Sequence record: BK067783.1
Length of the DNA: 30,340 bases
Direction: 5' to 3' (one strand)
Shown in pieces: positions 4,436-30,340 of this stretch. A model generated the notes under the pieces. It worked only from the letters and a program-made list of their open reading frames with translations. It was not told the DNA's origin and did no database searches. A program made the position numbers and the translations under genes. Numbering within the stretch: the first letter of the stretch is position 1; each line of letters opens with the position of its first letter.

Positions 4436-4797
4436 TACTTGCTCTCCATCTGGTTATCGAAGTCTTTGATATGTAATCGAAACATAGCGAAAGCACATAT
4501 TACAAGAATAGAAGGTAAGACGGTCATAACAAATTGTATTTGTTGAGGCATTACGTCATTTAATTGATGATTATATTTTAAACAAAGTTGTTTAAACTCA
4601 TCTAAAGATTTAGCTTCATCATGTATTGGAGATTTCTGCCAATCTTCAATAGTAATACTATTACATGATAAGTCTGTATTTGGATTCATAAATTTAATAA
4701 TAGACGGGCTTACTTCATACATTCCAAAAGCAGTTCCTATGCAAACTAGAATACCGACTACAATAGCTTTAAAGTTTAATTTATGAACTAAACTCAA
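4435..4797 (-). CDS. Two-TM membrane protein with Cys-bounded loop
   Basis: Hydrophobic segments flank a C-x26-C loop. Confidence 0.7.
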   Translation of the reverse strand: MSLVHKLNFKAIVVGILVCIGTAFGMYEVSPSIIKFMNPNTDLSCNSITIEDWQKSPIHDEAKSLDEFKQLCLKYNHQLNDVMPQQIQFVMTVLPSILVICAFAMFRLHIKDFDNQMESK

Positions 4798-4816
4798 TTA
4801 CTTGCACCTCGGGATG

Positions 4817-5305
4817 TCATTGGGTCTCAATCTTCCTTAACTCAAGCTTGGGTTTCTCTTTACTACCCACAACTTCAAAATCATTTAGCATTGGTGTATT
4901 ACCTGATTCAATCTGTTTGACAAGCTGATCTCCTAATGTAACTGACTCGCCACTTGGAAGCTTCATAACTATGTGAGCCATGAATATCTCTTCAATGGAA
5001 TACATCTCTGCTTCTTTTGCAGACAGTAAAGCTTTGAGATAATGGTAAAAATATCTGTAAGACCTAGCTTCGTCATATTCTTTTGAATACCTTGAACCTT
5101 TCTCTATGAATGGTATTTTGATTTTAATCATCAATGATACATCATTGTCTTTTCTTATTATAAATTCAAAATAGGATTTGTCACCACCTTGTTGAGTTAG
5201 TCGTTTCTCTTGTATGCCAAATTTAGCAAGAAGCTTGTTTACATCTATCATGGTCTTAACCGAATCAACTACAGTTCCTTTGTAAAGAGATGTCTTTGGT
5301 ATCAA
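4817..5305 (-). CDS. Conserved phage-type hypothetical protein
   Basis: Resembles a widespread phage family pattern (T..EI..LL..FG ... LKA.L.A.E ... EE.F.AHI.LP.G.T.G). Function unknown; recognised by eye only. Confidence 0.7.
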   Translation of the reverse strand: MIPKTSLYKGTVVDSVKTMIDVNKLLAKFGIQEKRLTQQGGDKSYFEFIIRKDNDVSLMIKIKIPFIEKGSRYSKEYDEARSYRYFYHYLKALLSAKEAEMYSIEEIFMAHIVMKLPSGESVTLGDQLVKQIESGNTPMLNDFEVVGSKEKPKLELRKIETQ

Positions 5306-24947: not shown

Positions 24948-25229
24948 ATGCCAGAATCCAGCACAATCATGGGACTTGTGGGCGCATTTATCGCTATTGC
25001 GATCATGCTTAACATAGGTGTCCAGATCTTAGGTAACGTACAAACTGCGACAAACTGTTCTAACCTGCCGGGTAACGCAGGTACACACCAGACAACTTCT
25101 AACGCCACAGGATGGGCGCTACAATGTCTTAACCAGAACACCAACGCACAATCAGCATACACGCTATTAGGAGTAATTCTTATAGTTGTGGCAGCTGTAG
25201 CAATACTATTCGTGGTCAGACTTCTTTAA
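24948..25229 (+). CDS. Major capsid protein, spindle-shaped virus type (SSV1 VP1/His1-like)
   Basis: 93 aa; two long hydrophobic helices flank a Cys-bounded loop with NCS/NAT sequons; C-terminal VVRLL; visibly GC-richer codons; own promoter and T-tract terminator. Confidence 0.8.
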   Translation: MPESSTIMGLVGAFIAIAIMLNIGVQILGNVQTATNCSNLPGNAGTHQTTSNATGWALQCLNQNTNAQSAYTLLGVILIVVAAVAILFVVRLL

Positions 25230-25476: not shown

Positions 25477-25605
25477 ATGAGTATCTTTGATTTGTTGGTG
25501 GATGTAGCGGTAGCTAGTGCCATTATAAAAACTACAAAGAAGCTATCAGATGATACTAAAGAATCAGATAATTCCAAGTATGAAGCCTTAGGGGTGAAAG
25601 ATTGA
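25477..25605 (+). CDS. Micro-protein, 42 aa (not in track)
   Basis: AAGGAG upstream; TTGA overlap with the next gene. Confidence 0.55.
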   Translation: MSIFDLLVDVAVASAIIKTTKKLSDDTKESDNSKYEALGVKD

Positions 25606-25871
25606 GTAGTCTTGTATTTCTTGGACTTTCTACAATCGTATTCATAATAACATACGGAATTGTATTTCTACTTGTTCCGCAAATACTAGGACACTTCTTT
25701 ACTGTACTTGATTCATACAATCTTACCAGTACCATGTCATCTAGTTGGCAAGCAATTTATACACAAAATGAAAACACTACTAAATTTCTAGTACCGTTAA
25801 TTCCTAGTATTGGAGTTTTTCTACTAGTCTTGAAAGTGCTTATGGCAGCTTCGGTTAAAGGAAGTGACTAG
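25602..25871 (+). CDS. Two-helix hydrophobic protein, possible minor capsid protein
   Basis: Same size and topology as the MCP; NLT/NTT sequons in the loop. Confidence 0.65.
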   Translation: MSSLVFLGLSTIVFIITYGIVFLLVPQILGHFFTVLDSYNLTSTMSSSWQAIYTQNENTTKFLVPLIPSIGVFLLVLKVLMAASVKGSD

Positions 25872-25911: not shown

Positions 25912-26523
25912 ATGAAAAGACTTTCTTTTATATCATCACATCCTAAAACCTCAATCATATTAATTATTCTTGCTGGTGCTATTTCCAGTTCAGCTTATGC
26001 AGCTAGTACCATAATAACTGATACTGGAATTACAACAACTAATCTTACAGTAACAGGAACTTGTTCAGGTTGTGGTGGTGCTGGTAGTTTTAATTCTTAT
26101 GCTTTAGTTTTTAATAATACAATAGCAACAACTAATATTCATTTTATAAATAAGTTTCAAATTGGTAATGACAAATCAGTCTTAGTTTCAGATACTTTTG
26201 TACAGGGTTATATGATAAACAGTACACAACAAGTAATTAATTCATTTTCTAATTCTGGTGCAGTAGTCGAGAATACTCCACAAAATGATCAATCATTCGG
26301 GGGGAAATATAAAATAGCTTACAATGATTCTACAAAGAAAATAACAGTATCAAAGAATGATGCGGTATTACAAACTCTATTCATTAACACATCACAGTTT
26401 AATGATGGTACAAACTTATCCAATGAAGGTGTATCTATATCAAGTGATGGAAAATATATAGGAATATTTGGTTTAGATACTACTGGAATAATTGACAGAC
26501 TAATAATCTATCAGGGATCATAA
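25912..26523 (+). CDS. Secreted beta-rich putative virion protein
   Basis: Signal peptide ending AYA; sequons. Confidence 0.75.
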   Translation: MKRLSFISSHPKTSIILIILAGAISSSAYAASTIITDTGITTTNLTVTGTCSGCGGAGSFNSYALVFNNTIATTNIHFINKFQIGNDKSVLVSDTFVQGYMINSTQQVINSFSNSGAVVENTPQNDQSFGGKYKIAYNDSTKKITVSKNDAVLQTLFINTSQFNDGTNLSNEGVSISSDGKYIGIFGLDTTGIIDRLIIYQGS

Positions 26524-27931
26524 TGGAACGGAATAAAAAAAAAACGAGTTCTATTTACTCGTCCTGTTAGGAATTTCTGTACTATCCATATTTTATATCC
26601 ATGATGCTTATGCAGTAGATGTTTATCCCGGTACTCAAATACAAAACAGCGCACCTCATCCTTATTCAAATTATACAGCTGATGTACATCCATTCTTTAC
26701 TGTTAGTTCCATAACAACAAACACTAATCATATATTTCTTGGTTCACCATCATATGATATTGTATGGATTGGAAATACAGTAAACGCTAACATTACATCT
26801 TTCCATGAAGGTGTAAACGCTACATTCAAAATAACAAACAATCCAGTTAATCCAACATTTACTATTCTAGGATTAATCCAACAGGTTAAGCTAGATGGAG
26901 TTATACAACCATATGGATCTACATGGTCATATACTGGTGGTAATACCATGACTCAAATCAGTCCGGGTACACATCATACCATATTCATATCATGGGTAGC
27001 TGGTTCTATTACATCATCTAGCTTTACAATAAAAGGAATTATTCTAAGTGGAGCTGGTGTATTTTCTAATTCAAACATAACTTTATCCAGTCCTGTTAAT
27101 TCTAATCTTACTGCATTACTTTTATTTAATCAAAATGGTTTACAAGACTCTATAATATTTAATCCACCTTTCCCTTTGGTAGCTGGTACACAACTTACTA
27201 TTCCAATTACTTTACGTGACATATCAAATCCAGTTGGAACTATTACCTATACAGAAGAAGCTATTGTATCAACACCAACGCAAGTAAGTGTAATAACATC
27301 TACACCGTTTAATTTAATATTTAATTCATTTAGACCGGGTTCGTTAAACTTTAATCAAACCAATACAAACGTGCTTCCTATCTATTTCATAACAACACAG
27401 ATAAACGCAAGTGATAAAAGATTGTCAGTGATATATCCTAATACAATGAATCTGCAATGTAACCTAGCTTATACATATGCCTTCACAAACAAAACCTATG
27501 GAGCTCCATTACCTAATGTTCCTTATACACCAGATCCAAATCATGTAAACTCTAGCTTCATATTCCATAAAGTAAACAATGAAATAATAACTGTATCTTG
27601 TCTTGATACTATATCATCTTCAACAGGCAAATACATTTTAACTCAAACTGGTTTTCCTTTACAAACTCAGGTATCAGGTTTTAGAAACGGAACATTTGGA
27701 ACACATGGACAATTTGGAGTATTTGATTTAATTTCACTAGTGGGAATAATAATAGCCATGATAGGATTCAATAGAAAGAATGAATCAGTGGGTGCTTTCT
27801 TTGCACTAGCAATATTAGGCATAGAAGGACTGATACAAATCATAACAATAAATACAGCAATCATAGGAGCTTTGATCGTGATAACAATGCTCATATATCT
27901 CTCGACACGCAAATCACAGGATTTTGGTTAG
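26523..27931 (+). CDS. VP4-like surface protein with C-terminal TMs, interrupted by a frameshift in A10 (26535-26544)
   Basis: The frame of 26948..27931 is open back to 26537 and encodes a signal peptide but has no start codon; the ATG at 26523 joins it only via a -1 shift. Confidence 0.75.
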
Positions 27932-28365: not shown

Positions 28366-28776
28366 ATGGAAATTTCTATTCTTGAATATATTGTGTACGC
28401 TTTAATTGGATATTCTTCTTTCGCTGTTCTAATTGTTTCAGCTGTTAAAGAAATTCCAGATAGTAGAGTCTTATCTTTAGTTAGAGTAATTTATTTATTT
28501 CCCGGTATCATAGCATTAATGATTCTTGCAAGCTCTGGAATAAACATAGATGTAAATACAGTAACAACAAACAACTTAATCAAATCCATAAACACTACAC
28601 AAACATGGACAGAAGCTACGACACAATCAAATACTATCATACTTCAAAATCCAGTATGGTCAATGTTCCATTGGTTGTTAGCTATTACTCTAATATTCTA
28701 TATGATAAAACAAATCTTGAACCTGTTAACAAAAGCACCAGCTCAGGGCGTAAGGGAAGATAATGAAGTCGAATGA
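28366..28776 (+). CDS. Three-TM putative structural protein
   Basis: Three hydrophobic segments. Confidence 0.75.
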   Translation: MEISILEYIVYALIGYSSFAVLIVSAVKEIPDSRVLSLVRVIYLFPGIIALMILASSGINIDVNTVTTNNLIKSINTTQTWTEATTQSNTIILQNPVWSMFHWLLAITLIFYMIKQILNLLTKAPAQGVREDNEVE

Positions 28777-30340
28777 TAAGAAGAACTTACCTTCTAATCC
28801 TAATAGTTTTTATATCATCTATCTACATTTCATCAGCTAACGCACAATTCGCAATTCAACCACCAACCGTTAACATACCACCAACAAATGCGTACAATCA
28901 ATTTAATGTAAGCAATGCTACCATTTCAGCAAAGAACTTTATTGCTTCTGTTAATATAGTAGGAAAGAATGGTTTAGGTGTAACAGGTTCTAACAGTTCT
29001 CAAACAATATATCTAACAGCTCCTAATCCATCATCAGGATTACCAACTACTTATTGTCCTGCTAACTTTGGATTTGTTTCTTATAACGCAACGACAAATA
29101 TTCTAGCTTGTGCATTGTTAAATCAAACTGGATCTGGTTCTGGTGTAACATCATTAAATAGTTTGACAGGTGCTTTAACAATAGCCAAAGGAACAAACAT
29201 CAATTCCATAACCGCAGCTGGTAATACTATAACCATAAACGCAGCTGGTTGGCAAAACAATACGGGTTCTAATTTAGGTACAAGTGGTTCTGGTGTCTTT
29301 GCTTCAATGAGTGGATCAATATTGCAATTCTTAAAACTAATATCATCAAATTCCTTTCTAAGTATAACAACAAACTCCACCAATGTTATATTTAATATTC
29401 CAAGTATTGTAACAAAATTAATTGCTGGTACTGGAATATCGGTAAATCAAACATCAGGAAATATTTTAGTAACTAATACGGGTGTGACAAAATTAGCTGC
29501 AACATCACCAGTTGTAGTTAACGCATCAACTGGTCAAGTAAATGTTTCTTGCCCTACTTGTTCAACTACAACAGGAACTATAACAGGAAGTGCAAACGCT
29601 GGTAAAGCTACTGGTTCAGTTGGTGTATTATCAACACCTACAACTACGTTAATCAAAGGCAGAAACATGACAGGTACTAGTCCTATTGTAGTTACAAAAA
29701 CAAATGATACAGATATAGCTATATCATGTCCAACATGTTCTAGTACAACTGGAACAATCACTGGTGGATCTAATATCGGTACTTCTGGTTTTGGTTTCTT
29801 CAAGAACAGTACAAATAATAATATTAATCTAAGAAACTTAACTACTTCAAGATCTGATCTATTTACAATAACTCAATCTTCTAATAATGTTAATCTAGCT
29901 TCTAGTTTCAAATCTAATACTATTGCATGTACGAATCAATTCATTTCTGCATTTACAAATTCAACTGGAATTTATACATGTGCAACACCCACTAATACAG
30001 CTCAAGTAGTAAGCGCAGACAATGGAGTAAGTTTAATTAGTTCACAATTTAATGCAACAGAAACAAAATTAAAATCATTACGTAATTCAACAGCTTATGT
30101 ATTATGGAATCATAATACAACATCAATTACACCTAGCTTCCAGTTTAAAATTAATACAAAGGCTTGTACAAACAATCAATTTATATCAGCAATATCAAAC
30201 AGTTCAGATTCTACATGTAATAAAATGTTACTTAATGCAGTAAGTAAAACTAATTCTTATACTGTTGCATCTACAGATGATATTATATTAGTAAATGCAA
30301 CAGGAGGTAACTATACTATTACTATTCCTACTATAGCAAC
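28773..30340 (+). CDS. N-terminal part of the ~1012-aa adhesin (not in track; continues at 1..1471)
   Basis: Translated by hand with no stop. ATGA overlap; signal peptide ending SANA; about 20 N-x-S/T sequons; internal repeats. Confidence 0.85.
   Translation, partial: MIRRTYLLILIVFISSIYISSANAQFAIQPPTVNIPPTNAYNQFNVSNATISAKNFIASVNIVGKNGLGVTGSNSSQTIYLTAPNPSSGLPTTYCPANFGFVSYNATTNILACALLNQTGSGSGVTSLNSLTGALTIAKGTNINSITAAGNTITINAAGWQNNTGSNLGTSGSGVFASMSGSILQFLKLISSNSFLSITTNSTNVIFNIPSIVTKLIAGTGISVNQTSGNILVTNTGVTKLAATSPVVVNASTGQVNVSCPTCSTTTGTITGSANAGKATGSVGVLSTPTTTLIKGRNMTGTSPIVVTKTNDTDIAISCPTCSSTTGTITGGSNIGTSGFGFFKNSTNNNINLRNLTTSRSDLFTITQSSNNVNLASSFKSNTIACTNQFISAFTNSTGIYTCATPTNTAQVVSADNGVSLISSQFNATETKLKSLRNSTAYVLWNHNTTSITPSFQFKINTKACTNNQFISAISNSSDSTCNKMLLNAVSKTNSYTVASTDDIILVNATGGNYTITIPTIA

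Follow-up and report, generated by a model that had tools for sequence, protein, structure and literature searches.

How is a protein made when its conserved reading frame opens with a signal peptide, holds no start codon, and lies one base out of register with the start codon ahead of it, the two frames meeting in a run of ten adenines? The question is posed by the window, by which we mean the complete 30,340-bp record BK067783.1, the 'Nitrosopumilaceae spindle-shaped virus' isolate NTT2 from a rhizosphere metagenome. Permuting and reverse-complementing NTT2 gives isolate NTT1 (BK067791.1), with 100% identity across the parts compared. Both genomes are described in Ni et al. 2024 (PMC10866085), where frameshifts are not mentioned, and the gene concerned, ORF64, was deposited as 26948–27931 only (327 aa, from ATG 26948). 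The JGI contig has 30,420 bases, 80 more than the deposited record. ORF67 (window 28773–30340 plus 2–1471) is split by linearisation of the circular genome; its counterpart in NTT1 is a single 3,039-nt ORF. The elements of the break are as follows.

25912–26523, plus strand: ORF63, the upstream secreted-protein gene, whose stop codon shares a base with the start of the recoded gene
26523–26570, plus strand: frame-0 start (ATG 26523–26525) and 15-codon dead-end open reading frame, with stop TAG at 26568–26570
26535–26544, plus strand: A10 tract, the proposed slippage site, at which the frame must change by −1 (equal to one extra mRNA base)
26523–26614, plus strand: signal-peptide coding region of the restored protein, with the A10 tract inside it; alignable with the P0004 signal peptide, which is intact
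26546–27931, plus strand: −1 frame open reading frame P0001, the real gene body (461 aa plus stop)
26544–26562, plus strand: 6-bp hairpin adjoining the run (weak, MFE z = −1.4)

The stop codon of ORF63 (TAA, 26521–26523) and the ATG at 26523–26525 overlap as TAATG. The −1 frame is open from 26537 to 27931; 137 codons precede ATG 26948, with ATG, GTG and TTG all absent from them, and the 5′ side of this frame is closed by a TAA formed by T26534 and the first two adenines of the run. Adding one A to the run, or removing two, yields a 469-aa product. A sequence-only reading of this DNA had singled out the coupled ATG with its stop after 15 codons, the start-less −1 frame of 137 codons with its signal peptide, the restoration of a protein of about 469 aa by A8 or A11, and the 6-bp hairpin next to the run. 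Each of these was recovered on reanalysis, the computed product being 469 aa and the hairpin pairing the last A of the run plus CGAGU with ACUCGU. The tract is the sole A/T homopolymer of at least nine bases in the 30,340-bp genome, in which A runs of four, five, six, seven, eight, nine and ten bases number 205, 61, 23, 4, 0, 0 and 1, respectively. An independently assembled Logan contig spanning the run likewise has A10, with no differences at the contig level.

The unannotated part of the −1 frame was compared between the window and its closest relative, locus L003. Across the 134 codons at 26546–26947, the two differ at 48 positions, distributed 4/5/39 over the three codon positions of the −1 frame, with a dN of 0.035, a dS of 0.57 and a dN/dS of 0.062; the annotated part has a dN/dS of 0.10. 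Because 39 of the 48 differences fall at third positions, the upstream part appears to be translated in the −1 frame. Judged by these substitutions, the unannotated N-terminal part is under strong purifying selection, and the A10 tract itself is identical in the two genomes despite the dS of 0.57.

To see the break in other genomes, contigs of reachable homologues were gathered from JGI, ENA and Logan assemblies, and the 5′ ends of the gene were read. Counting the window, 13 lineages are out of frame; they are terrestrial, and the relatives share 41–90% protein identity with the window. Scans of IMG/VR and GTDB genomes for further relatives or proviruses found none. The terrestrial loci sort as follows.

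Out of frame (−1) at A10: the window, L003, L008, L009 and L011
Out of frame (−1) at A9: L010 and L079
Out of frame (−1) at T10: L005 (= L006 = L007), L012, L015, L016 and L017
Out of frame (−1) at T11: L014 (= BK067788)
Intact, terrestrial, without a run: L004 and L080
Intact, terrestrial type, with an in-frame T10: L081

One architecture is common to all 13 out-of-frame lineages: an ATG or TTG start, usually 0–4 nt from the preceding stop, is followed by 2–6 codons, an uninterrupted run and a frame-0 stop after 6–27 codons, with the conserved signal peptide and the rest of the protein in the −1 frame. The dead-end open reading frames are unrelated in sequence among lineages, and in the A9 and T11 cases flanking differences preserve the −1 relation. 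Among A-run lineages, a TAA or TGA overlapping the run closes the −1 frame immediately 5′, so that reading into it from upstream is impossible. L005, L006 and L007 represent one virus assembled from three samples, with T10 each time (the T10 virus is present in JGI samples 3300050221, 3300050226 and 3300050231), and L081 is essentially one base apart from L005, the change lying just ahead of the run. Three of the attributes by which slippage sites are recognized are found together here, namely a pure A or T run of at least 8–9 bases, a conserved product that needs an insertion or deletion within it, and conservation of both the run and its frame relation. That diverged relatives keep the same break at an A or a T run points to a built-in expression device and not to an error.

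Two features of individual relatives were observed in passing. In NTM1 (BK067788.1), the deposited ORF59 begins at an internal TTG (L068:1463–1636; L014:2505), and the real gene start lies about 170 nt upstream, reading TTG AAC AAG, CAAAGA and T11, with a −1 change needed. In L003, an in-frame TAA (L003:1390–1392) replaces a Ser codon of the window ('...FNRKNE-S-VGAFF...') just ahead of the C-terminal helices; the frame is conserved past this TAA, and readthrough, a nonsense polymorphism or an error could account for it.

A tree of the C-terminal domain was rooted on marine genomes with giant, run-less versions of the gene (NMH1, NMC1, NMM1, NMP1, NMJ1 and NBC1), and all run-bearing genes fall into a single group. 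A clade of 13 rows (support 91/94) comprises 11 of the out-of-frame lineages and two run-less intact genes; the latter sit among A-run lineages, which suggests that the run was lost secondarily in them. L005, with T10, and L008, with A10, are sisters (97/87 to 100/98), and the residues encoded by the run vary between Lys-Lys-Lys and Phe-Phe-Phe. From this pattern, selection would have preserved a slippery run with its one-base frame offset, even as the base itself, the place of the run in the signal peptide and the encoded residues were altered.

The run is also found where no frame is broken. An in-frame T10 stands at the signal-peptide start of 11 loci (L018, L023, L029, L038–L040, L042, L045, L049, NYM1 and L081), 10–45 nt past the preceding stop codon. 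The codons flanking it differ among the 11 loci, and the chance of a T10 given the amino acids and codon usage is 0.04–0.21 per lineage, which speaks for conservation at the nucleotide level. Among 91 family representatives with a signal-peptide-like N-terminus, Phe-Phe occurs within the first 12 residues in 55 and Lys-Lys-Lys within the first ten in 5. The non-redundant family DNA, 378 kb in all, contains 22 A/T runs of ten bases, and the focal site accounts for 21 of them, as the run-length counts illustrate.

Non-focal A/T runs, 378 kb: five bases, 1020; six, 303; seven, 65; eight, 29; nine, 7; ten, 1; eleven, 0
Focal A/T runs, 378 kb: five to eight bases, 0; nine, 2; ten, 21; eleven, 1 (21 of 24 exactly ten)

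This excess of focal runs at ten bases argues that the tract is constrained at the nucleotide level, whether the frame is broken or not. The lone non-focal ten-base run, at L029:5073, heads another signal-peptide gene in which −1 is needed too. Three things, then, are established by sequence comparison: conservation of the out-of-frame architecture, purifying selection acting on the −1 frame, and conservation of the run at the nucleotide level. What the in-frame T10 does is not accounted for by frame restoration, and this counts against a slippage reading.

The marine contig that carries the lone non-focal run, L029, holds two more homopolymer-headed genes (5052–5090 and 4575–4600) downstream of its in-frame-T10 gene. 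At L029:5073, an ATG and four codons lead into T10 and then a stop, while the signal-peptide protein continues in the −1 frame. At L029:4590, an A9 heads a start-less signal-peptide open reading frame (4592–5068); upstream there is a single ATG, in frame with it but separated from it by a TAA that overlaps the run. Among the collected family loci, no homologues of these extra genes were found.

The nature of the product bears on why its expression might be limited. The restored protein begins with a Lys-rich n-region, a hydrophobic core and an AYA cleavage motif; beyond the signal peptide, it continues as a beta-rich ectodomain, an invariant MIGFNR motif and three hydrophobic helices.

27704–27913, plus strand: C-terminal membrane anchor, three predicted helices after the invariant MIGFNR; a module common to the whole family

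Pfam and PHROGs searches with P0001 and its neighbours returned no significant family. The AlphaFold2 model of P0001 is of low confidence (mean pLDDT 61), and the Foldseek matches of this low-confidence model were confined to generic beta-sandwiches of the tandem Ig/FN3-like type, at TM-scores of at most 0.23; on these generic, low-scoring matches, we describe the region simply as a putative beta-sandwich ectodomain. N-glycosylation sequons are not enriched (11, against 8.2 ± 2.5 in shuffles). An exhaustive, profile-free homologue search (E ≤ 0.001) identified 274 cluster representatives, most of which match residues 250–456 only. The part shared by most representatives is the C-terminal ~200 residues, and the ectodomains ahead of it span 200–1,600 residues, many with FN3 domains. 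A conserved C-terminal module of ~200 aa, made up of MIGFNR and the membrane helices, behind a variable ectodomain is likewise what the NTT2 gene encodes, and its sequence places it in an unnamed family of C-terminal-anchor structural proteins of thaumarchaeal spindle-shaped viruses.

The genes upstream support this placement in a structural context.

24948–25229, plus strand: ORF60, homologue of the putative major capsid protein (MCP) of Ni et al. 2024 (63% identity, E = 2e-32 to NYM1 ORF10)
25602–25871, plus strand: ORF62, an 89-aa two-helix hydrophobic protein that directly precedes the recoded gene in many relatives

The block runs ORF60, ORF62, ORF63, the recoded gene, two small membrane proteins and the gene of a ~1,000-aa repeat-rich secreted protein, which wraps around the ends of the record. 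As ORF60 is homologous to the putative MCP, the recoded gene lies in the structural module. ORF62 is a second small hydrophobic protein with the two-helix topology of ORF60; it was considered as the major capsid protein and rejected, the homologue of the published MCP being ORF60. Tail and adsorption proteins are unknown in this virus group (Ni et al. 2024, PMC10866085). An ectodomain that varies, joined to a conserved anchor for the membrane or capsid, suggests a surface protein of the virion or one that acts in adsorption, and a 'receptor-related' role is plausible from the architecture and the position of the gene.

Could the break be an artefact, a relic or a genetic switch? An assembly or sequencing error, with a true run of A11 (or A8) in an ordinary gene, had been allowed for in the sequence-only reading, homopolymers being error-prone; we give it next to no credence, for the break recurs in 13 lineages from different assemblers and different studies, the A9 and T11 variants remain −1, the independent Logan assembly also has A10, and the in-frame T10 of 11 other loci indicates that ten-base runs are not systematically miscounted. 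It is very improbable that the upstream part is a decayed remnant and that only ORF64 is made, without a signal peptide. The deposited annotation and similar gene-caller output in relatives would agree with a remnant, but the 134 codons upstream of 26948 have the low dN/dS given above and align with the N-terminal half of the intact P0004, L080 and L081, and the internal 'starts' called in relatives are at differing, non-homologous positions. DNA phase variation, in which replication slippage would maintain a mixture of ON and OFF genomes with assemblies showing the OFF majority, draws on the mutability of ten-base homopolymers and on the occurrence of both in-frame and out-of-frame states in the family. 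It is nonetheless improbable: the length of the run is near-invariant, T10 occurs in in-frame and out-of-frame lineages alike with the flanks setting the frame (as in L081 and L005), and the 13-row clade contains no run-bearing ON allele. At the contig level, A10 is found in NTT1, NTT2 and the Logan contigs alike, and T10 in each of L005, L006 and L007; moreover, a structural gene that was OFF in 13 consensus lineages would be expected to decay, yet its dN/dS is 0.06. Of the earlier proposal that phase variation or recoding doses a surface-type protein, recoding is upheld by the conserved out-of-frame run and by purifying selection on the −1 frame; phase variation falls away, the length being fixed at about ten and no in-frame allele with an altered run length having been found.

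Programmed recoding, by either the polymerase or the ribosome, is very probably what the locus encodes, and we lean towards slippage of the host RNA polymerase as the main mechanism. In such a model, translation would begin at ATG 26523, coupled to ORF63, and the 469-aa protein would arise only from decoding events that shift by −1 inside the A10, every other event yielding a 15-residue throw-away peptide. The host polymerase would slip on a run about as long as its RNA:DNA hybrid, so that a fraction of transcripts would gain one A (in T-run lineages, one U). The tract would then serve as a fixed attenuator, and a signal-peptide-bearing, C-terminally anchored beta-sandwich protein would be made in small amounts compared with its neighbours. 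We infer the occurrence and level of slippage, the polymerase as its agent and the dosing role from the sequence patterns described here.

All 13 tracts are pure homopolymers of 9–11 bases, and mixed heptamers such as A_AAA_AAC number zero. Nine bases correspond to the hybrid length and to the usual threshold of transcriptional slippage, and bacterial genomes select against runs of such length (PMC1088944; PMC5574713); in homopolymer transcriptional slippage, insertions dominate (PMC5574713). The correction needed is identical in every break, one added base. Polymerase slippage is favoured by the purity and length of the runs, as seven bases or a mixed heptamer would serve a ribosome, by a codon phase that varies among lineages while the length is constant, by the lack of a conserved stimulatory structure, and by the constant need for a single added base, the predominant outcome of slippage on homopolymers. 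Frameshifting by −1 on A_AAA_AAA or U_UUU_UUU during translation of faithful transcripts is a serious, though less likely, rival, and would give the same product and the same dosing role. It fits the same data because runs of at least nine bases always contain an in-phase slippery heptamer: an X_XXY_YYZ heptamer is in phase in every lineage, exactly −1 is needed, and in archaea a −1 shift has been shown on A_AAA_AAT (fucA1) and proposed on A_AAA_AAC in haloarchaeal tailed viruses (PMC8211752, PMC5009743). L012, L014 and L016 also have a common 7–8-bp hairpin 3 nt past the T run, a further point on the side of the ribosome. The purity, length and varying phase of the runs, however, speak against the ribosome, as does a site merely 3–8 codons from the start, and no stimulatory structure is common to the lineages. 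Neither upstream nor downstream of the run was a shared RNA fold detected (z −1.9 to +0.9), and no conserved structure lies 5–9 nt downstream. The hairpin of the window is destroyed in the 90%-identical L003 and in L008, and the loss in so close a relative argues against a stimulatory role for it. As to the hairpin past the T run (L012:1761–1781, L014:2518–2539, L016:1413–1433), it shows one-sided base changes only, the encoded peptides differ, and it is absent from L015, L017 and L005.

A further proposal, complementary to recoding and confined to the T runs, is that the U tract acts as an archaeal terminator or attenuator, with slippage a side effect that later became obligatory. Archaeal U tracts set termination efficiency (PMC8716108), the in-frame T10 is conserved at the nucleotide level shortly past the preceding stop codon, and in L023 an intergenic T9 (L023:422–430) directly follows the stop of an ORF60-like (MCP-homologue) gene and resembles an archaeal U-tract terminator. 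We consider this doubtful; the lineages with A runs have an identical frame break although such runs cannot act as terminators of sense transcription, and the run is absent at the junction in six marine genomes.

Were the host polymerase to slip at this site, the device itself would be of a known kind. Thermus dnaX (A9), Shigella mxiE (T9) and IS elements (A9/T9) likewise rely on pure A or T runs of about nine or more bases (Baranov et al. 2005, PMC1088944); as here, the longer conserved product of mxiE and the IS elements needs a non-templated base, and in the bacterial sites the run and its frame relation are conserved in relatives (PMC1088944). Slippage spectra, in which homopolymer insertions predominate, are given by Traverse & Ochman 2017 (PMC5574713). 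In contrast to the bacterial sites, the present one belongs to an archaeal host with a Pol II-like polymerase, its slippage is predicted from sequence, it lies 3–8 codons from the start within a signal peptide with a throw-away frame-0 product, and A and T runs interchange between close relatives. Bacterial surface-gene contingency loci also have a homopolymer near the 5′ end that governs the open frame, but their tract length varies between and within strains, whereas here it is fixed and the flanks set the frame. In insect endosymbionts, Tamas et al. in 2008 reportedly found that genes broken at A runs of at least ten bases stay under selection, polymerase infidelity restoring the frame in a share of the transcripts. 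There the break is tolerated decay in reduced genomes; here it is kept clade-wide, in one gene and at one position. In Ebolavirus, the full-length surface glycoprotein GP comes only from transcripts in which a poly-A site has gained one A, so that its dose is held down. Unlike the present case, the virus there has an RNA genome and its own polymerase, the site is mid-gene and the unedited product is a functional secreted protein. Ebolavirus GP editing is counted among the cases of polymerase slippage (PMC5009743).

The archaeal −1 shifts at A-rich sites, those of Saccharolobus solfataricus fucA1 and of the haloarchaeal G-T tail chaperones (PMC8211752, PMC5009743), resemble the present case in host domain, direction and base composition. 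They occur, however, on seven-base heptamers, partly with flanking stimulators, and fuse two substantial open reading frames or give two products, whereas here the site is an A or T homopolymer of 9–11 bases without a second product. Reviews of archaeal recoding cover the fucA1 frameshift, predicted haloarchaeal tail-chaperone frameshifts and Mg-chelatase (PMC8211752, PMC5009743); by their account, the field rests on one proven frameshift (fucA1) and a few predictions. These reviews and a full-text literature search yielded no report of programmed slippage by an archaeal polymerase or of transcriptional slippage in archaeal viruses, of recoding in spindle-shaped or thaumarchaeal viruses, or of such a site in non-tailed archaeal viruses. 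What would be new is the domain of life, a location inside the signal peptide, the exchange of A for T runs, and the coexistence of in-frame and out-of-frame states within one gene family.

At the level of the records, the annotation is corrected for at least three genomes (BK067783, BK067791 and BK067788), and a frame break at the run explains many truncated metagenome gene calls. Tentatively, the locus may represent the first conserved programmed slippage by an archaeal RNA polymerase, and the run a rheostat used throughout this family of thaumarchaeal spindle-shaped viruses, set in the signal-peptide codons of capsid-anchored, adhesin-like genes, in which an in-frame run would give mild and an out-of-frame run strong attenuation, the T version perhaps acting also as a U-tract terminator. 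The family provides one site in over 13 natural replicates, with A and T versions and in-frame controls, so that stuttering of archaeal Pol II-like polymerases on runs of hybrid length could be tested directly, in vitro or with reporter strains. For the biology of these viruses, the locus points to a dose-controlled, probably host-facing structural protein.
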